Shown in pieces: positions 5,571 to 31,581 of a DNA stretch of 50,271 bases. The number at the start of each line of letters is the position of its first letter. The stretch's first letter is position 1. This DNA is from Macrostomum lignano (lineage: Eukaryota): positions 1 through 50,271 of the forward strand of contig NIVC01004330.1 in NCBI GenBank assembly GCA_002269645.1, given 5' to 3'. The notes beneath the pieces are model-generated. The model saw nothing but the letters and a program-made list of their open reading frames with translations, had not been told where the DNA came from and made no database searches. The position numbers and the translations under genes were made by a program.

Positions 5571-6335
5571 AAGTAATGCTTCAGAATAAAAGGTTTTTAC
5601 GAGCTAGTTTCGGAATTCATTCTCATGGCTCCGATATTTGCCTTTTTACAGAGGCACTGGAGAAAGTGGTTTGCTTGCTGACACCCTCTGCTTGAAGCAG
5701 GCTATTAGCTTCAGTTTGCACCCATAAACCCACCTGCAGCGACAGCGGCTGCTCTCAGCAGCTGCACGCACCCACTTCAAACACCGGTGGAGCGAGAGGC
5801 AGCTGTCGTCAAACTGAAAGCTAAATGGACGGTTTGAGGGCTCTCGGTTTCTCATTGCCCCCTCCACAGGCTCCACCTCTCGATTACAGCTGAAGCTTCA
5901 TCAAACACCTCACAGTCCCGCAGCTGGTGTCACCAACCCATCAGAACAGCTGGCAAAACTCTGACTGGGAACTCGATAATTGCCCAAGAAATATTTTTGC
6001 TAAAACGTTTTCTCAAAATTTTATATTGCTTTGCCAGTTTCGTGTCGCTTACCAATAGAGTAATTGTGCATTGAGATTCAATCTGAAGCTGGCTTGATAT
6101 TGATATATTAAGGGAATCCCGGCACTGCTACAAAAAATTAAACAAAGTCTGTTGGATTTTTTTATTTAAGCGGTTACAAGTATTCCGATTTTTTAAAGAA
6201 ATTCAATAAAATTCGAATATGATGCTTTAAGCAGCAATATTCGCACATATAACTTTTCTATGAAAAGTACTTTCATATAGGGTAAGATGATGAGAAGAAT
6301 TAAAACGATTTAGCAGTACTTGTCCGAAAAAGCAC

Positions 6336-8461
6336 TCAGGTCATGATCAGTTTCTGCAAAGCCCAAGCCAGGAAAATCAGGCCGAATAGCGGGTGCCAGC
6401 TAGAGGCGCGCGTGGCACTGCGGGCTGAAGACTTCAGCATCTGTGGCAGCAACTCGCCGGACCCATTGTTTGGCTGCGGCCGGATCTGCAGCAGGTGGCA
6501 CATCAGACCGTAGATGTCCACCTGACGGAAGCTACCGTCGTTTACGCCGTTTAGCTCGACGCCTTGACGGAAACTGGGCCCAACGGCGAACATCGGCACC
6601 CGCATGTCGCTGTAGCTGTTGTCGAAGCCGTGGTGACCGGAACTTACTGGCTTCGTATCCTTGCTGGTCAGCACCAGGTAGCCCTGGTCGGGCAGCACGA
6701 GCACCTCGGGCGTCCTGCGGTTTTTGGCGTAGTGGAGTCGCTCCGGCAGACTGTCCTTGTCGAACACGCGCATGGAAAGGTTGCGCTGGCGCACCTGGTT
6801 GTTGAGGTACTCCACCAGCTGCTTCCGCTTACCCGGCTTGGCATTCATGGCCAGCAGCGGTCCGCTGTCCAGGACTCGGTCTACGAGCTCGTCCATGCTG
6901 CTGTTCAGGCGGATCACCTTGTCAGGCGTCATGCCCATCATGCCTGAAATGATGCAAATGTCGGTTCTATTCTGCATATGTATCAAATGGTGCAGTGCTT
7001 ACATTGATGGAAAATCTGGGTGAAACACATGTGGATCGTTGTGCCAATACAATGTATTAAAATATGCCTGACTGGCCCTCTTAAGTCCCGACAGTACTGG
7101 GATCGCAACTCCCTACAGTTTTCAGTTGCTGCCCCTGTCACAGCAATGAATATTGAGTGTACAGCCAGGGACATTTGGCTGGCGTGGCGACCCTACAGAA
7201 TACTCGCTTGGATAGCTGAGAATGGATTCCTTCCACTATGGATGGCAGTTTGAACTGCGTTAAAAACAGAAAATTGTACTCTGCGCCCAGCCCCTGCTGC
7301 AGCGGGAATCTCAGATAGCGGACTACTGATAAGGCTAACGAATTTTGACAGTTTCGTCAATTCTTGCCTGCAACTGCTGGTCAATGGCAAGCCTCAGCTA
7401 ACCGGCTCAGATAAAATGCACAGCCAAACAGCTCAGCTCCTGTGCTGAGAGAAAGCCCAGTCAGCGGCCAGAAGTGAACGGAAGTCAGGAAAAAAGACAT
7501 ACTAAATCACAGAGCTGTTACCTGTGCTTCCCGCGTTTTGCTCATTCTTTTCTGCGACACATAAAAATCTTGTTTCTCTCTCTTTGCTGTATCTTGGAAG
7601 TTGGTTTTAGATTAAAAAATCTGGTCCGAGATAAGTTTTCGATTTGAAGGTTCGCACACTAGAAATGAAACTGTTACAAAGAAAACTCAAGCAATTAATA
7701 TACAGCTTAATCATTCAGGCTTCCTCCTTTTAGGCAAAACTAAGAATGTCCTCACCGTGGTCTGATACAATCAGGACATTGACTTTATCTGAGAATTTCT
7801 TCGCCTTCAGTCCTTCGAATAGCGAGCGGATGGTGTCGTCAACTTTCTTTAAAACTTTCCTCATTTCTTGAGACTCAGGACCGAAATCATGTCCGGTGCC
7901 GTCGGGCTCATGTAGGTACATTGTGGCCATCTGCACGTCCTTCTCGGTGATCCACTCCAGCACGGTGCTCACCCGGGTCTCAAAGCTCACACTTCCGCTG
8001 TAGTTGAACCAGTAGTCCTGACGAACACCCTTGAACGAGACCTCGCTGCCGGGCCAGAAGAACGTGGCCGACTTCAGTCCCTGCTTCTTCGCGTTGATCC
8101 AGATCGGCTCGGATGCGTTCCACCAGCGCTCATCTCGAGTGCCCTTGTTGAAGGAGGCGTTGAACAGCGGGTCGTACATGCTGTTGCCGACGATGCCGTG
8201 GCTCTCCTGGTAGAGTCCCGTGGCGATGGTCCAGTGGTTGGGGAAGGTCTTTGTGGCAAAGGCCGGCTTCATGGACTTGACGTGCACGCCCTGCTTGATG
8301 AGCGACCTCAGGAACTGCGTCTCGTTGGGGTACCAGTTGAGGTAGTCGTAGCGGAAGCCGTCGCAGGAGACCAGGACCAGCGGGTATCGGGCTGGGCTGG
8401 CCGCCGATGCGCAGGCGGCGGCGCAGAGCAGAGCGAGAGCGGCGAGGCCAATCGACTGCAT
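6336..8461 (-). CDS. ENPP4/5/6/7-type ectonucleotide pyrophosphatase/phosphodiesterase, copy A; exons 8461-7756 and 6943-6336 (~437 aa)
   Basis: Signal peptide MQSIGLAALALLCAAACASA. Alkaline-phosphatase-superfamily motifs VSCDGFR, TKTFPNH (catalytic Thr), EPDGTGH, SDHG|M split by a phase-1 GT-AG intron, GHHGFDN, PMFAVGPSF. Hydrophobic C-terminal tail. Exact ENPP orthology is not assignable. Confidence 0.92.
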
Positions 8462-8515
8462 TTCGAATCCGGCAGAGCAGAAGGGCTGGCTTTGAAATTT
8501 TCTTCGCTCGGTCAG

Positions 8516-8523: not shown

Positions 8524-11493
8524 CAGTGACTCTTCGGAGCCCTGCTAGTGGGCCTTCAATTGGCTGTCTGTAGATACTGGACTGGCTGCCTGGCTGCTAT
8601 GCATAAGTGCATTTGGTTTGCTGTTCTGAGCGAACGAGCTTATTTTTTCTGCGGTCATACCTGGCCACTTCTCGGAAGCTCAATCTGCCTTCAAGAAGAC
8701 CTAGTAAGCTAACAAATACAGCCGTTTTTTCTGCAACCACGTTCTGCAGCTACGGACACTTTAGCTCCGTCGTAATTCTCTCCAAATTTTAACACTGGCC
8801 AAGCTAGTTCGAAAATATTTGCGCTGCACATGTCACTCCTGCAGCGGTTTTTGGCACCCCAGGTCCTCATGCGCAGCTGTAGCATTTCAGCTGAGACGAT
8901 AAACCGCTGCTCAAGAGCAAACATGAAAACATTTTGCCTGCTACCGAGCGAGCTGACATGTTTTAGTATGGCATGCATTTGTACTGAAATTTGCAGTAGA
9001 GATGAACAAGCAGCTTTGTAGCCTCCAAGATGTATGAAATAGTCGGATTTCAGAGTCCGTTTAGTATCAATCGAACTTTTTTCAATACATTAGATGCACT
9101 CAGCAACATGTACTAGTAGAAGTCTAAACTCACATCAAGCTTGCAGTTCTCGATTCAAATGTGGGTAATGCGATTCGCGTCACAAGGCACCAGCTTAGGC
9201 TGCTGAGGAGGGAGTGGAGAGTTATGGCTGGAGTTGGATTAAAGCTGCCAGTTTTCGAAAACTAGTTTCCGGGGTGAAAACATTAACACAAATTCTGATT
9301 GTAAAGTGCGACCTTCCTGGTGATTCCCAAGGCAGGGGGTGGATACTTCTAAAATTCTAAAGCATTCAAAGCCTGCTCGATCGCAGTTCGGGCCAGATTC
9401 CGACAAGACAGTGAATAAATATTATTTGCTTGCCAATACCTAAGAGAAAACGTCATTTTTCTCTGCAGAAAACCGGCTTATTTGCAACGGCCGAGAAGAT
9501 TGCAGAAACTGCTTTGCAGAATGGTAAATACGAGGTACCAGCGCGCGAAGAATTTGACCTTTTTAACCGCCGGCAAACGGGGCTTTTCTGGGTCAGAAAA
9601 AGACGCAGAAGTATCGGGATGCTTTTGCTGTGTTTTCTCGCATCTGAACCGAGCGCCGCTGGGATCTTCTGTGACCACCTTTGCTGTGGAAAAGTGCAAC
9701 TCTTGGGTGAAGGGGAAACCGCTCTGCCCGGCCGCGCTGGTTTGTTGGATTCCAGCTGAGATGGCGCGAGGCACTTCATCTTGTGCGGCCCAGCAGCTGG
9801 ACGTGTCTTGCAATGAATGAAGCGTCCACTCGCGAAAAGATTTTTCGCTTGAAAAATGGCCTTTTAATCACATAGATTGATAAACTGTTGCCCTCGTAAA
9901 TTCCGATTTCCGATATTAGAGAGGTTGATTTATTTGAGGTTCTTCAATATTTAAACCAAGGACCACTAGAAAACATGCAGTCTCAAGTTGTCCTTGATTT
10001 CAACTTCCTGGCTAAGGGCCCGGCAGGAGACCCCGAGAATATGATGTGCACGGTGCTGCATTCCATGCAGTCAGCAAATTTGCAGACAATCCGTTGCTTT
10101 TCACGCAGTTTTCACTACAGAATATTCTAACTTAGCTCCCAGAGCGGGTTCCCAATAACTCTATTCCTGCATTCCCTTGTTTTCTGACTCCGTGAGCTAA
10201 AGTTCAAACTAGCTGAATTCTGTATTTGAGATTTGCAACAAAGCAATGAACTGCAAGCAAGAATTTTGTTAATTTATGCATTTGTAATGTTTGAAAGACA
10301 GGTGGTGTAGTGCACTGTTATGTCTGGTTGTTATGGCTGCGGAATGAAGTCTGGTGGCCCGGCATGGTCTGGCAGGCGCAGGCGGCTCTGTCAAGGCGAC
10401 GCCTGCACCAGAACGCCGGAGGCGGTGACGCGCACGAGACACTCCCAGCCAGCCAACAGCGGATGGCAGACACAGCAGGGGAGGCAGACGTTCAGCAGCC
10501 GTCAGATAATTTCAATCGGCGCTGCGCCAGGAAGCAACCGAAGCTGTGCGACTGGCTTTTGGAAGCCCACCGGCTGTACGGCAACACGTCATCAGAACAC
10601 AATGCCACAGCAACACAGTCGGGCTCTATTAATTGAACAAATTATATTTGCAAAAATGTACTCAAATGTAATCAATGTTTCAGTTTTCTTTATGTTTAAT
10701 CTGCGAAGTTATCGAATTCTAGGCTTTGTACTTTTTTGGTTGGGGGAGAGATGTATTGCACTGTTACGTCGGGTCTCTCCTTTGCTCTCGCTTTTGTGTT
10801 CCCCCACGTGTACGCCCTTGCACTGTTACACAACAGTAGCAACGTTGTGCTCACCAGCTCGTATGTACTCAAAAAATATATGCTTAAATATACGGCCATG
10901 AGAGCCAAACTTCCACGCCCACACAAGCGCAATACAGGTGCTGATCTTTTGTTTTATATGCTTCAAAATGAGTATCTAAAATTTATTTTCAAAACCATAT
11001 TTTAATACAGCGATTGAATTTGAAAATATTCGATCCGATCAGGCCGTAAACACCAGTTAATAAGATTAAAATCACTCGTGCAGCTTCAGCATGCAGCAAG
11101 TTCTAATTGGGATCGCATGGAATTTGGCAACTTGTGGCAACTTTTCGTGTGCAACTATTTTCAGAAATAAATATCAGAAAATTTCAGACAGAGAGAGCGT
11201 TAGTTAAACATTTTTGTTAAGAGGGTTTCTAAACACGAGTAGGAGTAAACGAGTGCAGAGAATCTATTAAATCGGAGAAAATTTCTCAAAATCTTGCTCT
11301 AAATAAAAAATGATCCAGCATTTTTATCAAAAAATTTTATCATAGAAAAGTCTTCGATAAAGAAATGTTAGAGTTCACAAATGAATAAATCGAGAGGATA
11401 AAAGTGATTAAAAATCTATTGTAAGGTGTGGAAGTTTTGAAGTTTTAAATATCCTGTAAATAATTTATGGTAGAACCATCATCCGCTCGGCAT

Positions 11494-14400
11494 TCAGGAG
11501 AAAATGATGCCCGTCCTGCCGTCCCGGTGGACGCAAGAGCAGCTGGTGTAGCCGGATCTGCAGGCAAAGTCCGTGCCCTCGCTGCTCGGCTTCACGCAGT
11601 GCCCGGAAGCGTCCATGCAGTCGACGCTCACAGGGCCCGCCTCGGACTTCTCGGTGCACGAGTAGTGATAGCAGTAGCCCTCTGCCGGCACCTTTGTAGT
11701 CCAGGACGTGCCCAGCTTGTGCTCCGATGAGTCGTGGCCATCAATGCAGTGCCTCTCAAAGCTCACCACCTCCCCAGTTTCTCCATGTCCTGAAGGCGAT
11801 CCCGACTCACCAGTAGTTCCTGTCTCATGGGTTCCAGTCTCCTCACCAGTTCCAGGTTCAATGTCTGAAATTTAAATTTAAGGAAGCTTTGAGGCTGCAT
11901 CAATTTGATCAAACACAGAGCTCAAGCACAAAGCACGCAGATTAATGCTAAACTCAGCTCACGGGTTGGTGGCTTCCTGCCGTATCGGCCAAACACCTGG
12001 ACCTCGCACAGCATCAAGTAGGTCTTGGCAGTAGATTCGATTCGAACTGTACTGCCATAGCGATTGCAATTAAAAGTCCGCGTTGACAAATAGCCAGCAG
12101 TGGAGTGGTAACTGGCACACACTCTCCCATCCACCTTCACGATGATGTTTTTGAGATACCGCGAGCACACCGGGCCGCACAAGCGGGCGTAGATTCGCAC
12201 CTGTTGGATAAAGGCCGGCTTAATGGTCTTTGCCTGCCACCACGGCTTCGTCTGCATTTTCGTATGAGAGCAGGACTTTGCAGTAAAGTGCTGCGCCAGC
12301 TTCCCATCGATGGCTCTGGCGCACGGCGTGTGGGTGGAGCTTTGGCTGCAGTGCTTCAGCGGGAGAAGTGCTGCATGAACAAAAAAGTCAAGGATATTAG
12401 ACAGATATTCTCATTCATACAATTCGCTTTTTGCAACTCCATCTTCTTTCTAATCAAAAGAAACATCACTACTTGAATTGACTGTCGATATTTAGAATTC
12501 TACTAGCACAAGTCAATCACTCCGATAATACTCCCAAATATCAAACAGAAAAGCTAAATATCTCAAAATCCTACCTCCTTTATGAGCCAGCGAAGCATAC
12601 GTTCCGAAAACCTGAACTTCGCACAACATCAGGTACGTTTTCTTCGCCATAGCCTGAATCTCGACGACCTGCCCGACACTGTCGCAGTTGAGAGTGATTG
12701 TCGAACCGAGTCCAACGCCCTTGTGTCTGGCACAGATGTGGCCGTCGACCTTGACGACGATGTGTCTAAAGTTCACCCTACAAGGCGGAGTGCACAGTCG
12801 AGTGTAGATTCGGACCTGCTGGATGTGAGCGAGACGGTTCGTGTTTGCCTGCCACCATGGGTTCTTCTGACGCTTAGTGTGAGCACACGACTTTCCGGAC
12901 CAATACTGGCTGAAGTTATTGTCGATGGCTCTTCGACAGGGTGTATGAGTTGAACTCTGTCTGCAGTCTTGAAGTGGCAGCAGACCTGCAAAACATATTT
13001 TCGATAATCTGTCGGTAACATGTAATGTCGGTAGAACATGTAATTTTGTCAGAGTATACCTAAAACTGCCACCTCTGTAAAAAAAACTTACGTCCTTTGT
13101 GTGCTAACGAGGCGTAGTTTCCGAAAACCTGAACCTCACACAGCATCAGATAGGTCTTCGCTCGAGACCGAATTTCGACTACCTGGCCAACTCTGTTGCA
13201 CTCGAACGTGTGGGTCGAGAGGTAGCCCTTCGTCGATGTGTATCTGGCACAAACGTGCCCATCAACCTTGATGATTAGGTCCTTCAGGTATCTGGAGCAC
13301 ACTGGTCCGCAGAGCCGAGCGTAGATTCGCACCTGTCTGATGTGAGCCAATCGGTTTGTGCTCGCCTGCCACCACGGGCCTTTCTGCATCTTCGTGTGCG
13401 AGCAGGACTTTCCAGGCCAGTGTTGGTTCAGGTTGTTGTCAATGGCTCTCCGACATGGCGTGTGCGTTGAACTCTGCCTGCACTCTTGCAAGGGCAGCAT
13501 ACCTAGATTGGGGAAGTTTTATCGTATAGTTTCGCTCCTAATGGCGACATGATTGTACGATCGAATTCGATGGAGAAATAACCATGTGTGTATTCATGCC
13601 CTGTAGTCTTACTTCCTTTATGAGCCAGAGAAGCATACGTTCCGAAAACCTGGACTTCGCACAACATCAGGTACGTTCTTTTTGCCATAGCCTGAATCTC
13701 TACAACCTGCCCGACTCTGTTGCAGCTGAGAGTGATTGTCGAACCGAGTCCAACGCCCTTGTGTCTGGCACAGACGCGGCCGTCGACCTTGACGACGATG
13801 TGTCTAAAGTACACCCTACAAGGCGGAGTGCACAGTCGAGTGTAGATTCGGACCTGCTTGATGTGAGCGAGACGGTTCGTGTTTGCCTGCCACCATGGGT
13901 TCTTCTGACGCTTAGTGTGAGCACACGACTTTCCGGACCAATGCTGGTTGAGGTTATTGTCGATGGCTCTTCGACAGGGTGTGTGAGTTGAGCTCTGTCT
14001 GCAGTCACTGAGCGGTATTCGGTCTGAAATCGGTGTTTGCAGTCATCTGTACTAATGTGCAAAATGTAAACTTGTGGATGTATTGTAGCTCTTAGCATGA
14101 TAGTAGATGCCAATCAATTTTGGCTAATAATATATGCAAGCTACGAGTGTAAGCCTGTAGACATGCGTGTTAATTTATTTTCTAATTGGAAATATATTTT
14201 AATCCCTCAGCGGTAGAAGCTTATTTTAAGCAAGCTTACGTCCAGTGTGGGCCAGTGAAGCCCATTTTCCGAATGCCTGCACCTCGCACAGCATCAGATA
14301 GGACCGCACAGTGCTGTGGATCTCCAGAATCTGCCCGACTCGGTTGCAATGGAACGTCTTGACAGAGAAGTAGTGGCTCGAGTGGTACGAGGCGCAAGGA

Positions 14401-17400
14401 ACGCCGTCCACCTTGATCACAATGTTGTTCTGGTGCGACGAGCAGCCGGGTCCGCAGAGGCGGTTGTAAATCCGGACTGTGTGGAAGTGCGCCAGTCTGG
14501 GCGTGTTGGCCTGCCACCACGGCTTGTTCTGCATGTTGGTGTGCGAGCAGGAGTTGCCGGACCACTTCTGGTTAGTGTTGCCGTCGATGGCTCGATGGCA
14601 CGGAGTGTGCGTGGAGCTTTGCCTGCATGCCTGCAGGGGCAGCCGAACTGGAGAATTGTTGGTAAGTAAAAGCTATGTGACTTGTGTGAGTACTAATTTT
14701 TGAATGCCACTTTCAGTTGCCAGTAATTGCTTCAAAAAAATAATTGAAGGGTTCGCAGCCACTCATCAGAAAAACGGGGATCCAGCCTGTTGATTATTCT
14801 CTGAATTCCCCGCAGCTGTCTTCTGATTTCACTGCTGGTACCAGAAGGATCATGCTACTCTGCAGCGATAGTATATTCTGTTTGGAAAGAAATATTTTTC
14901 AACTTGCTTAGAGTCTCCCTTAGTTTTTAGTTCACTCACAGGGAGGCAGCTGACCTCTTGCCTTTTCTGAATTTGCTATCAACTACGTATAAAAGTTCCC
15001 AAATACAGATGCAGACAGCCAGCAAATGTTTTTTTTGCACAATCATGCCAAACCCTAACGAGCCAGTTGCATCCGAAGCGCCTAGCACTGTAAGGGCGCT
15101 ACGTGAGAAGCTTCAGAGCCTAGGGCTTTCAACACAAGGCAAAAAATGTGAACTTTTAATGCGGCTGAGGGCGCACCTCGAGGGCATCGCCTCCGACTTT
15201 GAGAATGCGGACGACGAGGACGAGGAGCGAGATGAAGCTGCCGCAGTGACGACGCGTAAAAGAAGAAACGGCGCTATGGCGAAGAGGCAACTGCCTTCTA
15301 TCGCGAACGAGTCGGTACAACATGGTCAAGAGTCTGACGCGGCTGGCGGCCTGGACGACGAGCTGGTGGAGGCTGAGAAGCAGCTCCGACTGCTAAAGCT
15401 ACGCAAGGAGGCCGCTCTGCTTCAGGCGGAAGTCAGCCAAATCAGCGAAGGCCTGCGACATCAAAGAATCCCGGTGAGTTGCTCATTAACCTGTGGTCTG
15501 ACGATGAAGATGCTGCCCAGCAAGAGCCCAGTCGGTTTGTAGGCAAGGTGTACCGAATCCCTGAGTTTATTAACAAGCGGAAGCAGCAGGAAGCAGGAGT
15601 GACTCAGTCCATTGACAAATCAGGGAGAGTCACCTTCAGAGTGAAGGAAGCTGTTGTTGACTCGCTGACGTTTGGAGACTGGATCTCGGCGAATGCTCGA
15701 ATCATTCTGAAGTTGCTGGATGATGGCAGGTTGGTGAAGAGCGGGCTGGGCGGCCAGCCTGATGTGTCAGAGTTGCGTGACTATCTGCGCTACACTGCGC
15801 GCATTGGCGAGCTGTTTGACCTCGGGTTCGACAATGCTCGAGTCATGAGGTTTAATGACGAGTGCAGACTGAGTGAAGATGGCGAGACGTCATGAGAGTC
15901 GCGCGGATCCGACCTTGGTCGAGTTGCCACCTACCTGATGGCCCCACAGAGTGCACCGACTGCCAGAGTTGACCGGGTGCAAAGACAAAGCCTGCAGCCA
16001 CCCTGCTTTGATTTCAACAAGGAAGCTGGATGCTCAAGGCGGAACTGCCGTTTCGCTCATCGGTGCCGGCGTTGTGGACTTGGCCACTCAGCGGCGATGG
16101 CGCACAGGGATGACGGTGCTGAGGTGAGCAGGCCTCTGCACTGACTGCGCGTCGATCCTGTTTTAACTTCCTCTGTTTTATCAACTGACCTAAAGCTGGA
16201 GGCTTGGATGGAAGAGTTGGAGTCGAATGATCTGCCGCAGGACAGAAAGCAGTTTATTCTGAATGTTGTGTCTGAGGGATTTCGGATTACGAATGTGCAG
16301 CGAGAAAACCTGAAGTCTGTCGAGGTCAGCAACTACGAGTCTGTGAATGTTTACGCTGAAGCTGTTCAAATGCAAATTCTGAGAGAAATTCGCCTTGACC
16401 GCTACCGTAGGTGCCCGGATGGGTGGCGGCCTCGGATTGTGAGTACGCTGGGTGCCCTGCCGAAGGATGGCGGTCGGGTACGCCTAATTCACGATTGCAG
16501 TCGGCCGGACAATCTGTCGGTGAACGCGCACTGGGAGAGCAATGAGAAGTTGCGATTTTCAAGCGCTGAAAACTTCGCAAGAAAGTTAACGAGAGGCTGC
16601 TACATGACTAAAGTTGACCTGAGTGAAGCATACCGCGCATGTGGAGTGCACCCAGGAGAATTCGTCAACACCGGTCTCAAGTTCAAGTTTCCTGGCTGCG
16701 CCACTCCCACCTACATGTTTGATACTCGCCTGCCGTTCGGGGCGGCAGCCTCGGTCACGTGCTTTCAACGCCTGAGCAATGCGATTCAGCTGATGATGGT
16801 GCGCAGAGGCTTCATCAACACCGAGTCTTACCTGGACGACTTTGCCTACTGCGGGACGCAGGAGAACTGCCAGCGCTTCTACGTCGATCTGATTGACTTG
16901 CGACTCGGCTGGGATTCATCGTCAATCCGGCCAAGTGTCAGCCGCCGGCGCAGAGGATGTCATTCCTTGGTATTGAGTTCGACACTGTGGAAGGAATCAA
17001 GAAGCTGCCGGATGAGAAGGCAAAGAAGTTGATCAACCTGGTTGGTGCCGAGTCAGCCAAGGTGAGGATTAGTCAGTGGGCCCTCCAACAGGTCATTGGC
17101 AAGTTGGGGTGGGCAGCTCAGGTCATCAGTTGCGGAAGGACCTTCTTGCGTGAGCTGATTGAGCGGTGCAACACCTTACGGCGCGGACAGCGAACGCTGG
17201 TCGACTCCGGGTTACGCAGTCAGCTGAATTGGTGGAAGGTGGCGTTACAGGCGTGCCGATGGGTGCAGCTGTGGCCGAGCTACAATCGAGTTGTGGCGAT
17301 GGAGTCCGATGCGTGCGGCAGAGGTGGTGCGGCGCTGGTGCGTGACCAGGATGGTCTGTTTGACTGGTGCTACCTGGACTGGGAGAAGGATGCAGGATCA

Positions 17401-20400
17401 GTCTTCGCGAACCTGCCGATCAACTACAAGGAAGCGTTGATCCCTCTGCTGACAGTGATGAGGTGGAGGGATGTGCTCAAAGGTTGCAAGGTGAGCATCT
17501 ACTGCGACAACCAGACGGCCTGTCACATCATCAACAAAGGCGTTTCAAAGTGTCCTGCGTTGCAGCGGCTGCTGTAGACGGTGGCTCTGGTGTGTTTGCA
17601 TTTTGGGATGAGCATTCGCGCGTTTCATGTGCCTGGTGATTTTTTAATTTTTGCTGACGCTGCCTCGCGGTTGCATGAGCGAGGCCAGCTGTTAAACTTT
17701 TTACTCCGCTGTTATGGTTTTATTTGCCCAAGCATTCTACAATCACTGCATCAGCATGCTTTTGGCTTGGCGACCGCCTCCTTTCTTCATTTTCAGGCCG
17801 CCCAGCTGCGTCAGACTCTCTTAGCAGCCGCGCCACATCGCTGGTGAGCGCTGCGTACGCACCGAGGTCGGCGCAGGCAGTCAACAGACACGTCCGTGAG
17901 TGGCGGGAGTTCTGCCGCCATACCGGCTGCGATCCAGTGTCCTGCAACGTCACGAGCCTGCTGAACTATTTGGCCAGTCTGATCGGCACACGGCTACATG
18001 CCTACAGCAGCATTTCGGCAGTCTACAGCTCTCTGTCGCTCTGGTTCCGAATTAACTCGTCGCCAGACCTGACTAAGCACGCTTCAGCGGTTCTTCTCCT
18101 ACGCGGCGCTAAACGGGTCCTCGGACTGCGCGTGAACCGAAAGCGGCCTGTGTCGCCTACAATGCTGACGGAGATGCGACGACTAGTTGACGAGACCGAC
18201 AGGCTGCAGCTGGCCTGCTGGGCTGTGACCATCTGCTGCCGGTGGGGAATGCTGCGAAAGTCCAGCCTTCTGCCACGAACTGGCAAGGGCCCGGCCTTTT
18301 CCCGGCGCGCCGACCTACTTCAGCATCCGAAGGGTCTGGTGTTGCGCTGCGAGTTCGGCAAGACCATCCAGTTTAAGGAGCGCAGCCACCTGGTACTGCT
18401 GCCGATATTGGCGCGGCAGCGAGCCCTGTGCCCGGTGAACGCAGTCGAGCGACACATCCGCGCCAACGGATTGAAGTCAGCAGTCACCGCTCTGGTCCTA
18501 CGCCGACGGAAGTGGCGTGGCGGCTTGCGCCTGCTGACTGGGAGGCACCTGGACTGCTTCCTCCGTGACAAGTTTGCCGCAGCCGGCGTTCGACCAGGAT
18601 CTTACTCCGCGCACAGTCTGCGACGAGGAGGAGCTACCTGGGCGTCTGTGCTAGGCCTCCCAGTGTCTGATATCATGCGCATTGGTGATTGGAAAAGTGA
18701 GGCTGTGCAGCGTTATCTCCCCCAGTTTCACCAGGCAGCGGTGGCTGCTGTGACTTTTGCCGGTGGTGTCTCTGCTTTGTTTTAGCTCCCAGCCTTCTGC
18801 TTTTGTTCGCTTGCTCGCTTTGGGTTTGGAGGTCGCTTTTTCGCTGTGCGCCTCCCGCGCGTTGCTCGCCTTGCTCGCCAATTGTCTCAATGCGTCTCTT
18901 TGTGTCTGGCTGGTCACTAAAGGATATTAGACAGATATTCTCGTTCATACAATTCGCTTTTTGCAACTCCATCTTCTTTCTAATCAAAAGAAACATTACT
19001 ACTTGAATTGACTGTCGATTTGTTTAGTTCTACTAGCACTTTTACTCCGATCTTACCCCAAATATCAAACAGAAAAGCGAAATAGATACTCTCAAAATCC
19101 TACCTCCTTTATGAGCCAGCGAAGCATACGTTCCGAAAACCTGGACTTCGCACAACATCAGGTACGTTCTTTTTGCCATAGCCTGAATCTCTACAACCTG
19201 CCCGACTCTGTTGCAGCTGAGAGTGATTGTCGAACCGAGTCCAACGCCCTTGTGTCTGGCACAGATGTGGCCGTCGACCTTGACGACGATGTGTCTAAAG
19301 TTCACCCTACAAGGCGGAGTGCACAGTCGAGTGTAGATTCGGACCTGCTGGATGTGTGCGAGACGGTTCGTGTTTGCCTGCCACCATGGGTTCTTCTGAC
19401 GCTTAGTGTGAGCACACGACTTTCCGGACCAATACTGGCTGAAGTTATTGTCGATGGCTCTCCGACAGGGTGTGTGAGTTGAACTCTGTCTGCAGTCTTG
19501 AAGTGGCAGCAGACCTGCAAAACATATTTTCGATAATCTGTCGGTAACATGTAATGTCGGTCGAACATGTAATTTTGTCAGAGTATGCCTAAAACTGCCA
19601 CCTCTGTAAAAAAAACTTACGTCCTTTGTGTGCTAACGAGGCGTAGTTTCCGAAAACCTGAACCTCACACAGCATCAGATAGGTCTTCGCTCGAGACCGA
19701 ATTTCGACTACCTGGCCAACTCTGTTGCACTCGAACGTGTGGGTCGAGAGGTAGCCCTTCGTCGATGTGTATCTGGCACAAACGTGCCCATCAACCTTGA
19801 TGATTAGGTCCTTCAGGTATCTGGAGCACACTGGTCCGCAGAGCCGAGCGTAGATTCGCACCTGTCTGATGTGAGCCAATCGGTTTGTGCTCGCCTGCCA
19901 CCACGGGCCTTTCTGCATCTTCGTGTGCGAGCAGGACTTTCCAGGCCAGTGTTGGTTCAGGTTGTTGTCAATGGCTCTCCGACATGGCGTGTGCGTTGAA
20001 CTCTGCCTGCACTCTTGTAAGGGCAGCATACCTAGATTGGGAAAGTTTTATCGTATAGTTTCGCTCCTAATGGCGACATGATTGTACGATCGAATTCGAT
20101 GGAGAAATAACCATGTGCGTATTCATGCCCTGTAGTCTTACTTCCTTTATGAGCCAGAGAAGCATACGTTCCGAAAACCTGGACTTCGCACAACATCAGG
20201 TACGTTCTTTTTGCCATAGCCTGAATCTCTACAACCTGCCCGACTCTGTTGCAGTTGAGAGTGATTGTCGAACCGAGTCCAACGCCCTTGTGTCTGGCAC
20301 AGATGTGGCCGTCGACCTTGACGACGATGTGTCTAAAGTACACCCTACAAGGCGGAGTGCACAGTCGAGTGTAGATTCGGACCTGCTGGATGTGCGCGAG

Positions 20401-22234
20401 CCGGTTCGTGTTTGCCTGCCACCATGGGTTCTTCTGACGCTTAGTGTGAGCACACGACTTTCCAGGCCAGTGTTGGTTGAGGTTATTGTCGATGGCTCTC
20501 CGACAGGGTGTGTGAGTTGAGCTCTGTCTGCAGTCTTGCAGAGGCAGTTTGGCTAAAATGGTTTCGGTACGAATGCATCATAAAATATCCTTGTTAGCAT
20601 CAGAATGCAAAATCTGTACTAAATGATAGACTGGATTGCGTGACTTACCGCCTTTATGAGCCAGAGAAGCATACGTTCCGAAAACCTGGACTTCGCACAA
20701 CATCAGGTACGTTCTTTTTGCCATAGCCTGAATCTCTACAATCTGCCCGACCCTGTTGCAGCTGAGAGTGATTGTCGAACCGAGTCCAACGCCCTTGTGT
20801 CTGGCACAGATGTGGCCGTCGACCTTGACGACGATGTGTCTAAAGTACACCCTACAAGGCGGAGTGCACAGTCGAGTGTAGATTCGGACCTGCTTGATGT
20901 GAGCGAGACGGTTCGTGTTTGCCTGCCACCATGGGTTCTTCTGACGCTTAGTGTGAGCACACGACTTTCCGGACCAATGCTGGTTGAGGTTATTGTCGAT
21001 GGCTCTTCGACAGGGTGTGTGAGTTGAGCTCTGTCTGCAGTCACTGAGCGGTATTCGGTCTGAAATCGGTGTTTGCAGTCATCTGTACTAATGTGCAAAA
21101 TGTAAACTTGTGGATGTATTGTAGCTCTTAGCATGATAGTAGATGCCAATCAATTTTGGCTAATAATATATGCAAGCTACGAGTGTAAGCCTGTAGACAT
21201 GCGTGTTAATTTATTTTCTAATTGGAAATATATTTTAATCCCTCAGCGGTAGAAGCTTATTTTAAGCAAGCTTACGTCCAGTGTGGGCCAGTGAAGCCCA
21301 TTTTCCGAATGCCTGCACCTCGCACAGCATCAGATAGGACCGCACATTGCTGTGGATCTCCAGAATCTGCCCGACTCGGTTGCAATGGAACGTCTTGACA
21401 GAGAAGTAGTGGCTCGAGTGGTACGAGGCGCAAGGAACGCCGTCCACCTTGATCACAATGTTGTTCTGGTGCGACGAGCAGCCGGGTCCGCAGAGGCGGT
21501 TGTAAATCCGGACTGTGTGGAAGTGCGCCAGTCTGGGCGTGTTGGCCTGCCACCACGGCTTGTTCTGCATGTTGGTGTGCGAGCAGGAGTTGCCGGACCA
21601 CTTCTGGTTAGTGTTGCCGTCGATGGCTCGATGGCACGGAGTGTGCGTGGAGCTTTGCCTGCATGCCTGCAGGGGCAGCCGAACTGGAGAATTGTTGGTA
21701 AGTAAAAGTTATGTGACTTGTGTGAGTACTAATTTTTGAATGCCACTTTCAGTTGCCAGTAATTGCTTCAAAAAAATAATTGAAGGGTTCGCAGCCACTC
21801 ATCAGAAAAACGGGGATCCAGCCTGTTGATTATTCTCTGAATTCCCCGCAGCTGTCTTCTGATTTCACTGCTGGTACCAGAAGGATCATGCTACTCTGCA
21901 GCGATGGTATATTTTGTTTGGAAAGAAATATTTTTCAACTTGCTTAGAGTCTCCCTTAGTTTTTAGTTCACTCACAGGGAGGCAGCTGACCTCTTGCCTT
22001 TTCTGAATTTGCTATCAACTACGTATAAAAGTTCCCAAATACAGATGCAGACAGCCAGAAAATGTTTGTCATAACGGAGGACACTAAGTACTGCTAAGCA
22101 TGCTAACTGCATGGCACCATTCAAAGTTTACTTGAGAAACATTGAGCACAGAAAACAAAGGGTGGCAACTCACTTGCGGCAGAGAAGCTGCACAAAATCG
22201 ACACCAGCAGAAGCGCCCTGAAGACTCTCTGCAT
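11494..22234 (-). CDS. Secreted multi-domain F-type lectin-like protein: signal exon + ten FTL cassette exons + linker/VWC-like exon (~1510 aa if all exons are joined)
   Basis: Exons: 22234-22174 (signal MQRVFRALLLVSILCSFSAA), A 21683-21276, B 21059-20649, C 20552-20142, D 20031-19621, E 19514-19104, A' 14647-14240, BC' 14023-13613, D' 13502-13092, E' 12985-12575, F 12370-11963, last 11864-11494. All have GT-AG boundaries in phase 1 and I saw no internal stops. Each cassette reads C.QSS.H.PC.RAID.N...SC.HT....PWWQ...V.IY.RLC...I.VKVDG..CA...C...G..VEI...YLMLCEVQ.FG, the fucolectin/FTP fold signature. Confidence 0.85.
12390..15031. repeat. Lower copy of the intragenic tandem duplication (exons A', BC', D', E')
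   Basis: Near-identical to 18920-22067 including introns, but 507 bp shorter. Homology starts at AAGGATATTAG (12390 vs 18920) and ends at CAGACAGCCAG.AAATGTTT (~15031 vs ~22067). Confidence 0.95.
15045..16144 (+). pseudogene. Gag-like ORF1 of the YR retrotransposon (SAP-like N-terminus, C-terminal Cys/His finger), disrupted
   Basis: SAP-like TVRALREKLQSLGLSTQGKKCELLMRL. Core DWISANARIILKLL...DYLRYTARIGEL. Finger CFDFNKEAGCSRRNCRFAHRCRRCGLGH. Frameshift near 15440-15480 and in-frame TGA at 15893-15895. Confidence 0.75.
16208..17847 (+). pseudogene. Reverse transcriptase / RNase H of the YR retrotransposon, disrupted
   Basis: RLIHDCSRP, KVDLSEAYR, LPFGAAAS, YLDDF, FLGIEFD, ESDACGRGG, INYKE, IYCDN, HVPG...ADAASR. 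1-bp frameshift near 16901 and in-frame TAG at 17575-17577. Confidence 0.92.
17724..18785 (+). CDS. Tyrosine recombinase (DIRS/Ngaro type), open reading frame intact
   Basis: N-terminal SAAYAPRS...WREFC. Catalytic set retained: MLRKSSLL (R), GKTIQF (K), CPV, HSLRRGGAT (HxxR), IGDWKSEAVQRYL (W and nucleophile Y). Confidence 0.9.
   Translation: MPKHSTITASACFWLGDRLLSSFSGRPAASDSLSSRATSLVSAAYAPRSAQAVNRHVREWREFCRHTGCDPVSCNVTSLLNYLASLIGTRLHAYSSISAVYSSLSLWFRINSSPDLTKHASAVLLLRGAKRVLGLRVNRKRPVSPTMLTEMRRLVDETDRLQLACWAVTICCRWGMLRKSSLLPRTGKGPAFSRRADLLQHPKGLVLRCEFGKTIQFKERSHLVLLPILARQRALCPVNAVERHIRANGLKSAVTALVLRRRKWRGGLRLLTGRHLDCFLRDKFAAAGVRPGSYSAHSLRRGGATWASVLGLPVSDIMRIGDWKSEAVQRYLPQFHQAAVAAVTFAGGVSALF
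18920..22067. repeat. Upper copy of the intragenic tandem duplication (exons A, B, C, D, E)
   Basis: Near-identical to 12390-15031 apart from one additional exon+intron unit. Confidence 0.95.
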
Positions 22235-22324
22235 GTCTCTTTAATTCGCCTTTTTGTCAGTCTTTGGTTCGAAAAACTCTTTTTCTGAGCGCAGCGTGCT
22301 CCGATTTCTGAGTTTATGAGGCGT

Positions 22325-24302: not shown

Positions 24303-24488
24303 TTGGAGTGCCTGTCTTGTTGGAGTGCCTGTCTTGTTGGAGTGCCTGTCTTGTTGGAGTGCCTGTCTTGTTGGAGTGCCTGTCTTGTTGGAGTGCCTGT
24401 CTTGTTGGAGTGCCTGTCTTGTTGGAGTGCCTGTTTGTTGGAGTGCCTGTCTTGTTGGAGTGCCTGTCTTGTTGGAGTGCCTGTTTGT
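24303..24488. repeat. Minisatellite, 17-bp unit TTGGAGTGCCTGTCTTG (~11 copies)
   Basis: Directly visible tandem array without spacers. Confidence 0.95.
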
Positions 24489-25153
24489 TTCTAATGGGCC
24501 AATTTTTTACTTTATGCTTATAATTTTGTAACTGTTGCAGTTTCTATTGCTCTCCTGATTTATTTGATAGCTAGCAATATTTTTACACAGTTAAAGCGTA
24601 ACGGGTACATTTTCAAGTATTCTGAAATTCAAGATTCAGTTGGCATGTCATGCGGTTTATCAACTGACAAAGCATAGTAAAATTTAAATATAAAGGACTG
24701 AATGTTCACATCCACACATGTGTTTCCTCACACTTCTGCTAATAGAAGTTCACGCTGATGAACTGGTGGATTCGCCACTGCAAGTTTGTCGCTCGTAGGT
24801 AAGCGCCAACTTGTTCATGACTGAAACCAGCAGCTGTTGGTTTTCACCATGCCGCAAATATTGTGCTAGCGAATATTTCTAAGCCAAAATGGCTAATATT
24901 GTACAACAGAAAACCAGCCAGGGACCACTGCCACTGCTGTCAATCTAAAAGCAAAGCACGAAGTACGAGCTATGCTTCAGAAAATTTGCAGAAGTATCTC
25001 GAAACTGTCTCCGAATACATGGAAGCAACTACGTTCACGGTTCAGTATATTTTATTATCGAACCGAAATTTAATTCGTAATGTTGGTACCCAATTAGATT
25101 ATGTTCTTTTCAATAATTCATAAACGTGCACTCAATTTTCAAGGCAGTTTCCT

Positions 25154-26621
25154 TCAAAACTTTGAGAAGAATTCCGTCACCATGTTCATAACCTTCTCAA
25201 AAAACATCAGACCAACGTGCGTGAACCAGGAAAAGTCGGACCCCAGACTGGACATTTTCAAAATGAACGGCAGATAGTCAGTCGACCCATTGTTGGGCTG
25301 CGGCCGGATCTGCAGCAGGTGGCACATCAGACCGTAGATGTCCACCTGGCGGAAACTTTTTCGTCTGTTGCCGTCAATAAGGAAATTGTGATTGAAACTG
25401 GGCCCAACGGCGAACATCGGCACCCGCATGTCGCTGTAGCTGTTGTCGAAGCCGTGGTGACCGGCACTTACTGGCTTGGTATCCTTGCTGGTCAGCACCA
25501 GGTATCCCTGGTCGGGCAGCACGAGCACCTCTGGCGTCCTGCGGTTTTTGGCGTAGTGGAATCGCTCCGGCAGACTGTCCTTGTCGAACACGCGCATGGA
25601 CAGGTTGCGCTGGCGCACCTGGTTGTTGAGGTACTCCACCAGCTGCTTCCGCTTACCCGGCTTGGCATTCATGGCCAGCAGCGGTCCGCTGTCCAGGACT
25701 CGGTCTACGAGCTCGTCCATGCTGCTGTTCAGGTGGATCACCTTGTCAGGCGTCATGCCCATCATGCCTGAAATGTTTTAAAACAGACGCACGATAAAGC
25801 CTGATCATATTTTTTAGATTCGAAAAATATATTTTTATCGGTGTCTAAATTACCTACGAATATGACCAATGGTTTTCTAAAGATGGTTTCTGTCCAGAAA
25901 AAAGATGGCTCTCACCGTGGTCAGACACGATCAGGACGTTGACTTTATCTGAGAATTTCTTCGCTTTGAGACCTTCGAATAGCGAGCGGATAGTGTCGTC
26001 AACTTTCTTTAGGGCCTCTCGGACCTGCTTTGACTTTGGACCAAACTTATGACCAGAACTGTCGGGCTCATTTAGGTACATTGTGGCCATCTGCACGTCC
26101 TTCTCGGTGATCCACTCCAGCACGGTGCTCACCCGGGTCTCAAAGCTCACACTTCCGCTGTAGTTGAACCAGTAGTCCTGACGAACGCCCTTGAACGAGA
26201 CCTCGCTGCCGGGCCAGAAGAACGTGGCCGACTTCAGTCCCTGCTTCTTCGCGTTGATCCAGATCGGCTCGGATGCGTTCCACCAGCGCTCATCTCGAGT
26301 GCCCTTGTTGAAGGAGGCGTTGAACAGCGGGTCGTACATGCTGTTGCCGACGATGCCGTGGCTCTCCTGGTAGAGTCCCGTGGCGATGGTCCAGTGGTTG
26401 GGGAAGGTCTTTGTGGCAAAGGCCGGCTTCATGGACTTGACGTGCACGCCCTGCTTGATGAGCGACCTCAGGAACTGCGTCTCGTTGGGGTACCAGTTGA
26501 GGTAGTCGTAGCGGAAGCCGTCGCAGGAGACCAGGACCAGCGGGTATCGGGCTGGGCTGGCCGCCGATGCGCAGGCAGCGGCGCAGAGCAGAGCGAGAGC
26601 GGCGAGGCCAATCGACTGCAT
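25154..26621 (-). CDS. ENPP-type phosphodiesterase, copy B; exons 26621-25916 and 25767-25154 (~439 aa; an upstream in-frame ATG at 26648 is possible)
   Basis: Same motifs and the same SDHG|M intron position as copy A, with EPDSSGHKFGP. Intron is 148 bp versus 812 bp in copy A. C-terminal tail differs. Confidence 0.92.
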
Positions 26622-28830
26622 TTCGAATCCGGCAGAGCAGAACACCATGGCTTTGAAATTATGCGTAGGTGAGTATTATATAGCGACCCTCAAGCGAGTC
26701 GGCTTCCATGAATCCATGCTGTAGCCATATCAGTTTTTGTTTGATTGCGAATTTGCGCAGCGCTTCTTCGATTCGACTGAAGGCAAAATGCGCATACAGC
26801 TATTCCTGTCAAGAATTTTTGCATTTGGGGATCTTTTCTACACAAATAATGTCTTGTGGAATGTGTTGAGCCTCATGAAAATTTGTGGCATGAGCTCTAT
26901 TCGTCAGTCCATGAGTTGCAAAATTTTCGATTTCCTATGGATACTAGACTCTTGGCGCTCATACCCCTTCGCAAATTCATTACGGGACAGAATTCATGCT
27001 CTGCTGTTTACTTTTTTTCTGCTTTTTGGAACGCGCCTTACGAGTATCTTCCTTGAATTGCACATTTAAACGACTTGTCTTTCGTCTGAGGAGCGAATTT
27101 AGCTGCGTGGTTGAATATTAAATGCTGCTTGACGTGTTTTTCTTCATTTTTGTCTGGTACATAAGCGTTGAAAAAAAACAGGGTAATAGTGAATTAAACT
27201 ACAGGCAGTTAAGATGTCTTCATTTTGACAGCCGTGGCAAATGTTTTTAGTAGATTTTTCACTTGCAGCACAAAAAAGCACCAAGCCAAACTGATTTCTT
27301 GGAGATGATTTTCAAACCAAAAACTCGTAGACTAGTCGTACCCGATAGCATTTTTCATATTGCTGTTGACCTTGTCTTTCGAAAGCTATCAATATTAAGC
27401 CAAGGCCATGCAAGCAAGGCTATAGGAGTCAACTAGCTCGTAGTCTATTGGTTGGAACAGACCATGATGGCCGTTTTTCTGCTGTAATTGATCAATCAAT
27501 AGCGCTCGCTCGATTTAGTCTGGCTACAAAATTCGGCGCTTTATCTTAATCTATTTTGGTTCTCAACTAGCAAACTCATTCGTTATAGAAACTCGATCCG
27601 CCCTCTCTGACTTTGCTGAGTCTCCTCTTCGATCGATCGAGATTTCAACTGTCCATGTGCCACTTTTCTGCTGTAGTCTCTGACACAACAGACGAGATCG
27701 TCTGGAAAGACACATGGCTGACTGAACCGTGACAGTAAAATGGTAGTTTAAAACCTGTTTAAAAGCGGGTTAATTTTTTTGACAGATCAGTTCCTCTTAT
27801 ATGACACATGTACTGTACATTTGTTTTACCAAGAATGCCAAGAATTACCATTTAGGCTCTACACTTTTTACTGCGAATACAGGTGTTGTACAGGTGTTGT
27901 ACATGTCTTCTTCTAATGCACACGAGAGGTTTTTTCAGAAGTTCTGACTTTTGCGCACGATTTACGAGTTCGATCTAATTTTTATGTGTCGGACCAAGTG
28001 CTTTACTCGTATTAAATAGAACCCGGCTCCCTCAGCCCGAGCGTCACGCCCTTAAGAACAGTTTCCAGCGGGCCAAGCCAACTATGGAGTTGACACACCC
28101 ATACCAACCAGCCCGGCTGCTACCAGATCCTAAAGGGCGGCTGAAGCGGCCTGCGGTGAACTCGGGCCATTCAGCTCAACGGCCTTCTAAGCCCTTGATC
28201 AAGGCTTGTCAGGCGGTAGCATAAAAATCAATCACGTAATGCTCAGGCAGCTCCAACTCCTGTCAGATAGTCACCCCAGCTTTAAGGTTGCATACGAGTT
28301 AGATTATGGTTACATAGGTTGCATATAGATCGCGAGGAGCAAGGACCACTAGTGAAACAGCTTGGGACGTAAAACTCAAGGATCGTGTATTTTAAAGAGG
28401 CAAACTTCCCGGAAAAGAAATACACTGCGGCGGAGATAGAAAAACTTTTTATAACATAATCTATGATTTAATTTGATCTGGGACAGTAGAGATTTCAATT
28501 CTTTAAATTTAAGGCCCTAGGCCTAGCAAGCTCAACATATTACTCTCTGTTGTATTTTAGATAGTTGTATAGTGAAAGTTTTATTATCTTCATGTTTTTT
28601 TATTTCATAAAACCCAAGCCAAAGTTGTAGTCACGCCCTTAAGTCACGCCCTTTGTCTACAATTGTAGACAAACAATTGGCACAAAAAAAATTTTGTTTC
28701 GTTCCTTTTTTAATTGAATCAAGTATATTTGTAATACATTTGTTGCATGCAGGTACTCTTAGCCTTAAGCAAAACCTTGGCTTTAAAATGAATAGCTTTC
28801 TAAAGACTATAAAAACAAGGGGTGCTGACC

Positions 28831-30530: not shown

Positions 30531-31581
30531 ATGCCTCAGCCATTGCAGCAGCATACAGACCAAAACTGTGCCACAGCACTCTCACAGCCAGGCTTGTGGT
30601 TTTCTAAACCTACTGTTAATCCACTGAAATCTGATCTGAAGCTGGCCCCATGCACTAGTGAGCTGCAGCTCACTGCCGGCAAGTCCACTGCAGCCAAATC
30701 CAACAGTGCACCAACAGCCTCCTGCCACTGCTTCTTGGCTGAGATTTGCCAGCTGCACCCCAATTCTGTCTTCGACTGCAAGGATTTGGCCTTGTGAGCA
30801 TATTGAAGTGGCACAAGAGAGTAGATAGAGAGATTGTGATGGAAGGAGAGAGTAGATGGAGAGATGGTGATGGGAGGGAGAGAGAGAGTAGATGGAGAGA
30901 TTGTGATGGGAGGGAGAGAGAGTAGATGGAGAGATTGTGATGGGAGGAGAGAGTAGATGGAGAGATTGTGATGGGAGGAGAGAGTAGATGGAGAGATTGT
31001 GATGGGAGGGAGAGAGAGAGTAGATAGAGAGATGGGGACGGGAAGAGAGAGTAGATGGAGACATGGTGATGGGAGGGGAGTCATAGGGTGGTTGCCATCA
31101 CGCCAACACCCGCCCCGCCGCCCGCAGGCGCTCGGTGACTGTAGAGCTGGACGTGTCGCCCGGCTCCTGCAGGCAGGAGGCGTGGCAGCTGATAAACTCA
31201 GAGGTGGCCGCTGGCTGCACCCTCGCGTCCATCAACGCCAGCCGACTGTCCAGCGGCCGAGTGCTGGTCAGGCCGGAGCTGTCCGCCGTGCTGCCGCTGA
31301 CGCTGAGTCACGTGACCCACCTGTCCGACATCATCGCCGGCTGCTCGGTGCGGCTGTGCTGGCAGTGCCGCCACCGCAGGCGGGGAGGCCCCCTGCTGCG
31401 CTGCGCCCGCTGCCGCTACGCCCGGTACTGCCGGCCCGCCTGCCAGGCCGAGGACTGGCGCCGCCACCGTTTGGAGTGCGGCTCGGCCGTGCGCACCGTG
31501 GCCAGGCTGGTCTGCTTCAACTATGCCGGGCCTGAGCCGCCCTTCAACCCCTTCTATGCCTTTGTGTCTGACCTTGCCTGA
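30531..31581 (+). CDS. MYND zinc-finger protein; exons 30531-30793 and 31128-31581 (~238 aa)
   Basis: CWQC...CARCRYARYCRPACQAEDWRRHRLEC is a complete MYND finger. Upstream exon HCFLAEI...DCKDLA joins in phase 2 via a GTGAGC...CCGCAG intron. The start codon is tentative. Confidence 0.75.
30820..31075. repeat. Purine-rich intronic minisatellite (~28-34 bp, GAGAGAGTAGATGGAGAGATTGTGATGGGAGG)
   Basis: Tandem array filling the MYND gene intron. Confidence 0.9.

Follow-up and report, generated by a model that had tools for sequence, protein, structure and literature searches.

A repeat-less Ngaro-like retroelement at the joint of an in-frame exon-block duplication in a lectin gene of Macrostomum lignano

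That transposons can accompany duplications, and that filler DNA can occupy the joints, is well established. The capture of Ty1 complementary DNA (cDNA) at double-strand breaks in yeast is a known case of such filler, and template switching, as in fork stalling and template switching (FoSTeS) or microhomology-mediated break-induced replication (MMBIR), gives duplications with inserted segments at the joint. Among the tyrosine-recombinase retroelements, Ngaro elements are defined by the repeat order A-pol-B-A-B (PMC3783388) and are separated from DIRS1 and PAT by the absence of a methyltransferase (PMC4157794), and for DIRS-1 a transcript and a linear single-stranded cDNA without most of both terminal repeats have been described (PMC7192593). 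Here we describe a lectin gene of Macrostomum lignano in which a Ngaro-like element copy sits precisely where the two parts of an in-frame multi-exon duplication meet; the gene has ten lectin exons against seven in an element-free relative. The DNA analysed (the window) is the entire contig NIVC01004330.1, 50,271 nt, of assembly Mlig_3_7 (GCA_002269645.1).

[quoted passage not shown] The lectin gene is present in three further contigs, L001 (NIVC01000868.1), L002 (NIVC01002401.1) and L003 (NIVC01002342.1), hence four related contigs in total including the window. L001 is element-free and unduplicated, and L002 and L003, termed sister contigs here, are variant carriers of the element, which allows a base-by-base comparison of ancestral and derived states within one assembly.

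The lectin gene lies on the minus strand, is of the secreted multi-domain FTP/discoidin type, and carries direct duplicates which BLASTN aligned at 96.9% identity over 12390-14006 and 18920-20535 and at 99.2% over 13608-15031 and 20644-22067. The upper (5') block (18920-22067, minus strand, 3,148 bp) contains the 3' 384 nt of intron 1, five lectin exons and the next intron minus the final 18 nt before its acceptor. In the lower (3') block (12390-15031, minus strand, 2,642 bp) this 384-nt part of intron 1, its acceptor intact, is present again, together with four lectin exons and the next intron; the upper copy has one additional 507-bp unit. Homology between the blocks ends at 15031/22067 and begins at 12390/18920, and the whole gap between them, 15032-18919 (3,888 bp), is one element. 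The two outer positions corresponding to its ends are unoccupied in both the window and L001. Site s1 (ATGTTT|GTCA, 22065-22071) lies in intron 1, where its break at 22067|22068 comes 106 nt after the donor of exon 1. Site s2 (AAAGTC|AAGG, 12384-12392) has its break at 12389|12390, and the acceptor AG of the last lectin exon (12372-12371) follows 18 nt downstream. A preliminary description of this DNA, made from its letters alone, had reported near-identical blocks with an element filling the whole gap, two empty sites and an upper fifth-exon intron cut 18 bp short of its acceptor, and all of these stand.

Between s1, in intron 1, and s2, in the last lectin intron, GTCA is the only sequence in common; the breakpoints in homologous sequence expected of non-allelic homologous recombination were not found at the host level. 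Homology provided by two element copies is conceivable, and is disfavoured given the missing A repeat described below. The duplication is a real, inherited tandem copy of a 2.6-3.1 kb exon block within the lectin gene.

The element in the joint is a defective, repeat-less Ngaro-like core on the plus strand, antisense to the lectin gene. A gag-like region (15045-16144, ATG at 15045) with a SAP domain (32 bits), a coiled segment and a CCCH zinc finger is followed by a pol region with reverse transcriptase (RT) as well as RNase H (16145-17723), a tyrosine recombinase open reading frame (ORF) of 353 aa that is open in the window (17724-18785), and a 3' stub (18786-18919). RVT_1 scored 42.4 bits (cut-off 29.6) on a frame-intact sister copy, the RT_RNaseH match was weak, and relatives of the element at 50-60% identity carry PF00078 and PF17917. 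The recombinase ORF itself gave no significant Pfam match and an empty PDB sequence search; its homologues are annotated as Tyr recombinase or PF00589, and alignment places the invariant residues at R178, K213, H297, R300, W323 and Y331. No Pfam match to a methyltransferase was obtained in any piece of the element, and only ~150 nt lie between RNase H and the recombinase. Like Ngaro, then, the copy has gag, RT, RNase H and tyrosine recombinase in that order on one strand, the catalytic R-K-H-R-W-Y set, no methyltransferase and, as in a canonical element of the same genome, a B-like motif directly after the recombinase gene; it differs in having no A-pol-B-A-B split direct repeats, in its nonsense and frameshift lesions and in an N-terminal SAP domain in gag, the last also found in two related loci (L005 and L008, below). 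By its predicted domain content the element is of the Ngaro type, in line with its first classification as a Ngaro-like tyrosine-recombinase retroelement.

By now the copy is dead. The window and sister element copies have two stops in common, at 15893-95 and 17575-77, and single-base deletions near 15440 (gag) and 16901 (RT) occur in the window only, being absent in both sister copies. The gag of a sister copy is in one frame; that of the window has one frameshift of its own and one shared stop. The window frameshifts may be real mutations or leftover long-read consensus errors, and we rejected them as a sign of an old insertion since two window-specific 1-bp deletions could be assembly errors. 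For the age of the element only the shared stops are informative.

Very little flanks the coding core. The insert starts with TTTTTTTTGCACAATC at its left edge and finishes with GGTCACTA at its right, and just 13 nt (TTTTTGCACAATC) precede the gag ATG and just 134 nt follow the recombinase stop. In the left junction segment (15029-15044, plus strand) a T-run, the first three T of which also belong to host ATGTTT, is followed by GCACAATC and then the gag ATG; in the 3' stub the B-like motif TTTGGGTTTGGAGGT lies at 18819, and 86 nt follow the motif to the end. Split, internal or terminal repeats significant at >=14 nt were not found within 14800-19100, nor were A2/B2 at the right, and no terminal inverted repeats of the DIRS1-like kind were found in the window element. 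The window and the other loci retrieved contained no second copy of the element; searches with the recombinase and RT/RNase H as queries gave, as protein relatives, only sequences at 57-60% identity, which came from a JGI sample and from a Logan run, and a family at 34-46% in M. lignano.

A member of that family, the canonical Ngaro-like locus L005 (34-46% protein identity to the window element, same SAP-gag architecture), has repeats A1 (4877-5108, 232 nt), B1/A2 (9148-9407) and B2 (9486-9543). Its A1 ends in T8, followed by CTCAGCCACAATCAAT-ATG, which is the same T-run/CACAATC motif as at the left edge in the window, and its recombinase stop is followed by the B1 motif TTTGGGTTTGGAGGT, A2, a spacer, and B2 with 41 nt ending GGTTTAA. 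The window element has T8/CACAATC at its extreme left and the 15-nt B motif at 18819, as in L005, with nothing of A upstream of the T-run and only 86 nt beyond B. By this analogy, the window copy is a repeat-less derivative and not a complete Ngaro member, reduced to a coding core with stubs of the flanking repeats. The closer relative L008 is intact with a single 368-aa gag ORF, and its contig stops 38 nt before the gag ATG; this break is likely to mark the edge of a repeat, since contigs built from graphs in this way tend to stop at the start of repeats. L005 also contains, between gag and RT (6403-6583), a perfect 83-nt inverted repeat with a 15-nt spacer, which may be a long-read assembly palindrome or a small insertion.

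At the left junction, host AAATGTTT passes into TTTTTGCAC with three T assignable to either partner, and at the right junction GGTCACTA passes into AAGGATATT with 0 nt assignable to both. The microhomology first suspected in the left T-run is the TTT common to host and element. Set against the 0-5 nt of microhomology taken as the mark of end joining or template switching, the junctions show TTT at the left and 0 nt at the right. Neither has a target-site duplication, in the window or in the related contigs, and with 0-3 nt of microhomology they look like end joining. The left one at least is, by comparison with related elements, a non-canonical join, because 13 nt stand before the gag ATG where the normal Ngaro A repeat is missing.

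Both sister contigs show the same block-element-block order, with both junctions base-identical to the window and other linked variants differing. Their elements are distinguished from that of the window by 44 substitutions, two 1-bp indels and a 385-bp deletion in the recombinase gene (window 18215-18599; L002 4740/4741, L003 13634/13635). Because the junctions are base-identical in three otherwise differing contigs, the sequences support the element and the duplication being one event; the chance of an independent hit within a few bp of the joint in a ~10 kb gene is ~1 in 1,000. The structure is older than the divergence of its carriers (~1%). A duplication without the element, which the preliminary description had put forward as the arrangement that would speak against its account, was looked for in the four related contigs and not seen. 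The alleles with the element at a single site, for which it proposed a search, were not found among them either.

L001 has one block (six domain exons) and the last lectin exon, with s1 and s2 intact. Within the 1 kb that begins at s1 and takes in the first domain, ~7 derived sites are common to every carrier's upper copy, judged against the lower copy and L001, and in the intron before s2 these upper copies share ~8 clustered differences relative to the lower copies and L001. In the first-domain unit, lower domain 1 of a sister contig shows 0.0% difference from L001. The carriers' 3' flank and last lectin exon differ from L001 by 0-0.2% (last lectin exon 0.19%), and their promoter-proximal flank by 1.2-3.7%. 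On this pattern two diverged chromosomes probably took part, the promoter and upper block coming from one and the lower block and 3' side from an L001-like other. We rejected L001 as a deletion revertant, since lower-type bases persist in it as close as 9 nt to s1 and the carriers have a different promoter-proximal flank. In the window, the lower copy has upper-type bases at >=7 sites of the domain 1-2 region (13608-15031 against 20644-22067) at which the lower copy of the sister contig agrees with L001, which indicates a gene-conversion tract between the window blocks; conversion of the lower copy to the upper state accounts for their 99.2% identity.

As for the mechanism of the duplication, we infer, at a probability of roughly one half, a single aberrant break-repair or template-switch event with a repeat-less element copy as the bridge. 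A broken or stalled end at s1 would have been joined, over 0-3 nt of microhomology, to the T-run at the 5' edge of a linear element copy that lacked its repeats. This copy would have been the sub-genomic cDNA intermediate in its free form, or else DNA templated by an element that the partner chromosome had at s2. On its far side the element would have run on into s2 of a diverged homologous or homeologous chromosome, which would have supplied the upper block and promoter side. We favour repair or template switching because a crossover needs two same-orientation insertions and a normal left end, absent here, and because normal recombinase integration gives no copy without repeats. The shape of the insert, moreover, matches by analogy the DIRS-1 sub-genomic intermediate introduced above.

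Several variants of this repair reading are conceivable. In one, a free linear cDNA would be ligated between two broken chromatids. In another, which fits equally well, the element would already have stood at s2 on the partner chromosome, and the right junction would have come from actual integration; the upper block and element core would then have been copied by repair synthesis over a long tract, or by way of an antisense read-through transcript, with end joining at the T-run to finish. A 3' transduction variant, in which read-through of an s2 element into the antisense block would be followed by cDNA-templated repair, agrees with the retention of introns, with the divergence of the upper block and with the missing element-sense AATAAA/ATTAAA, and is indistinguishable from the other repair variants. 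No AATAAA or ATTAAA occurs on the element-sense strand over 15032-22300, which is compatible with read-through; six occur on the lectin-sense strand inside the element.

A number of points weigh against this reading. The closest relatives of the element reach only the 57-60% protein identity given above, with no second copy of the exact family in reach, and calling the insert truncated is a matter of analogy with related families and of the family definition. The right end (B-like motif and 86 nt to TAA) resembles the right terminus of L005 and could be a genuine integration end, and were the A repeat of this family short, a unit-length circle that opened within A could have given the insert. 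The contigs are mosaic, and later gene conversion could mimic a two-chromosome origin. Finally, GTCA, found at 22068-71 (beside s1), at 12387-90 (across s2) and at 18913-16 (4-7 nt inside the right end), could be a lead towards a recombinase target. It is a weak hint, as the preliminary description had judged when it reported these occurrences: in a Monte-Carlo simulation three random windows of that size shared a 4-mer with p ~0.03.

The mechanism first proposed for the locus was homologous crossover, in which normal same-orientation insertions at s1 and s2 on two haplotypes would undergo unequal exchange inside the element. Of that proposal, one linked event is supported and two diverged chromosomes are probable; the crossover between two normal insertions is not supported, given the missing A repeat, and we consider it unlikely. 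Its geometry fits, with both outer sites empty and a single element at the joint, and the sequence pattern likewise suggests two diverged parental chromosomes. Site s2 also looks insertion-prone: L003 carries an unrelated 211-bp poly(A)-ended insertion (19475-19685) with a short ATAT-type duplication, corresponding to ~12394-12398 of the window and only a few bp from s2, and given this second, independent insertion the neighbourhood may be prone to insertions or breaks. However, crossover requires two independent same-orientation insertions ~3 kb apart, the A repeat is absent at the left junction and A2/B2 at the right, and the four related contigs include no single-site element.

A second option, raised at the outset as recombinase or template-switch activity, fared differently in its two halves, template switching or repair fitting the left junction better and the recombinase running into the lack of any workable GTCA register. 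In the recombinase form, the element's own tyrosine recombinase would join a circular unit copy to pseudo-sites s1 and s2 on different chromatids, or alternatively an integrated end would recombine with a second site and make the duplication directly; either course is doubtful. The GTCA at or beside both host breakpoints and near the right end speaks for it, as does the left flank of L005, which ends GTCAA. The recombinase ORF is also open in the window with all catalytic residues, and the shared TTT at the left recalls the trinucleotide-overlap idea for DIRS integration (PMC7192593). The GTCA coincidence, however, is weak and was found post hoc, the offset of the motif differs per breakpoint (TTT|GTCA, GTC|A, GTCACTA|), the expected trinucleotide is missing at the right end, and the left break lies at the A/internal boundary, not at the B-A circle junction. 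We tried and rejected a single GTCA crossover register for both junctions, none giving both. A specific version, "alternative integration", in which a unit-length circular copy would be joined by its own recombinase to two GTCA-bearing pseudo-sites on sister or homologous chromatids, is by analogy imaginable and rather improbable. If true, it would mean that tyrosine-recombinase retroelements, in the manner of Ac, could make in-frame exon-block duplications directly in one step.

An assembly artefact, with two haplotypes merged via a shared repeat into a false block-element-block contig, would suit the redundancy of Mlig_3_7 with its 180 Mb of duplicated blocks (PMC5730564), and the blocks differ by 1-3%, like haplotype divergence. 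We regard it as very improbable, because at least two distinct molecules carry the structure: both junctions are present in three contigs, and two versions of the element (with and without the 385-bp deletion, 44 substitutions apart) each link both. The spans of 2.6-3.9 kb are moreover short for 130x PacBio data, and two non-canonical insertions would still be required. A duplication formed first, with the element inserted later exactly into the new joint, is hardly credible, for although the lectin exon array often gains and loses units (7, 10 and 10 exons, with differing fourth-domain variants retained), a hit within ~3 bp of the joint (~1 in 1,000 in the gene) would be needed, s1 and s2 have no homology to drive a simple unequal crossover, no contig has the duplication minus the element, and the insert lacks normal ends and a target-site duplication.

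The host gene kept its reading frame through the event. A TATA-like box precedes exon 1 (22234-22174, all lectin exons being on the minus strand), which holds the ATG and the signal peptide MQRVFRALLLVSILCSFSAA and ends at a phase 1 donor, GTGAGT, as placed from the sequence and the joined ORF; the same N-terminus is found in the annotated proteins P0060, P0128, P0129 and P0130. The upper block has five lectin-domain exons (21683-21276, 21059-20649, 20552-20142, 20031-19621, 19514-19104) and the lower block four (14647-14240, 14023-13613, 13502-13092, 12985-12575), of 408/411 nt. The tenth and last lectin-domain exon (12370-11964, donor GTGAGC) and a Cys-rich C-terminal exon with the stop (11864-11494) are unduplicated. 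The C-terminal exon had been missed in the preliminary description, which was otherwise right wherever it could be checked, bar the starting exon count given below. Each of the ten lectin-domain exons equals one domain of ~136 aa and all are phase 1-1, compatible phases as first noted, and together with the signal exon they join into a single ORF of 4,203 nt (last exon read to 11922). The increase to ten domains thus holds; the starting count of five or six does not, the element-free relative having seven. A first impression of broken lectin domains, gained from the ORF listing, was rejected: alternative start codons had produced it, and the domain exons are all open, in four of four related contigs.

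Joining the blocks in the transcript would involve splicing from the upper fifth-exon donor (exon E) to the lower first-domain acceptor (exon A'), across a 4.46-kb composite intron containing the antisense element. Such an in-frame E-to-A' splice is plausible from the sequence, because the lower first-domain acceptor retains 384 nt of its intron. The annotated genome-guided models contain no E-to-A' splice and omit either the lower exons or most upper exons: in that of L003 the signal exon and the five upper exons run straight to the last lectin exon and the C-terminal exon, and in that of L002 the signal exon and the upper first domain are joined to lower domains 2-4, followed by the last lectin exon. 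These models may represent real exon skipping or a collapse of repeated exons in short-read assembly. Any in-phase exon skipping keeps the lectin frame.

The conceptual protein is 98% identical to M. lignano database proteins, in a cluster that includes BOX15_Mlig000828g5, and the family is named FTP-domain proteins in UniProt. Its repeats match F5/8-type-C and NedA-like galactose-binding profiles (F5_F8_type_C_2); in P0129, six stretches match PF22633 (E = 3.3e-34) and six match PF00754 (E = 6.1e-27), and one domain on its own gave a profile match under the cut-off. In its tandem ~136-aa domains, profile matches and signal peptide the protein resembles F-type (FTP) and discoidin-like lectins. 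It differs in that the fucose-binding motif H...R-x-D-x4-R is, by eye, partly kept, with H, R and R present and the spacing and Asp different. The product is a predicted member of a carbohydrate-binding family.

Exon units within the array also vary between contigs. The fourth lower exon of the window (12575-12985) is closest to the sixth L001 exon, that of a sister contig (L002 9990-10400) is closest to the fourth L001 exon (the L001 exons compared being at 12232-12642 and 13287-13697), and the two lower exons are 4.5% apart. Independent losses of two 517-bp units from the lower blocks are suggested by this, and with them a turnover of the exon array through unequal exchange. In L002 the last lectin exon has a 1-bp frame change at ~10990-11012 (EVQVLADTAG... 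against EVQVFGRYGRK...), seen in the aberrant C-terminus of PAA58200.1.

Elsewhere in the window, pieces of an ENPP-type phosphodiesterase (PF01663) lie on both sides of the lectin gene, at 25154-26648 (minus strand) and ~7751-8499, and the related contigs all share this arrangement, a hint that an ENPP-lectin unit was duplicated earlier and on a larger scale. A 3.8-kb array at 31577-35372 consists of ~224 copies of the 17-bp satellite ACCTGACTCTCCCTGCC (68% G+C, strong C skew). Further tandem arrays occur at 4342-5571 (19 bp), 24303-24489 (17 bp), 36110-36703 (32 bp), 38279-38723 (19/40/59 bp) and 46209-46762 (28 bp), the copy number of the 19-bp array varying between sister contigs.

Compared with duplications attributed to FoSTeS/MMBIR, the locus has the same non-homologous breakpoints with microhomology and what would be a templated insertion at the joint, made in a single complex event; it is distinct in that a mobile element, or RNA or cDNA derived from it, would have served as the template. 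With the capture of retrotransposon cDNA or other filler at breaks, and with the repair-mediated duplication described in vertebrates (PMC2671141), the locus has in common an inserted element copy without complete terminal repeats, 0-3 nt of microhomology, no target-site duplication and duplicated nearby chromosomal DNA; here, however, the filler is the nearly full coding core of a tyrosine-recombinase element, and it bridges two non-allelic positions of one gene to give an in-frame exon-block duplication. The duplications made by reversed-ends (alternative) transposition of maize Ac/Ds (PMC3744419) also have the element exactly at the joint of a tandem direct duplication, formed in one event with both outer borders clean. 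Ac/Ds, however, move by cut and paste as DNA, keep their termini intact and leave 8-bp target-site duplications at the breakpoints, whereas the insert here is a retroelement with no target-site duplication and with ends other than normal termini, the left one non-terminal, unlike the Ac type. The DIRS-1 intermediate (PMC7192593) differs in its inverted repeats, internal complementary region and methyltransferase, and is normally completed before integration, whereas an uncompleted form appears to be fixed in the chromosome here.

By analogy with these systems, the locus suggests that repeat-less intermediates or ectopic copies can act as bridges when chromosomes are repaired and in this way contribute to the exon shuffling of immune-type lectin genes, and it offers a concrete place to ask whether recombinases of this class make rearrangements. 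What is new relative to the known cases is a tyrosine-recombinase retroelement at the joint, an insert shaped like a replication intermediate, and an exon-block duplication that is intact and in frame.

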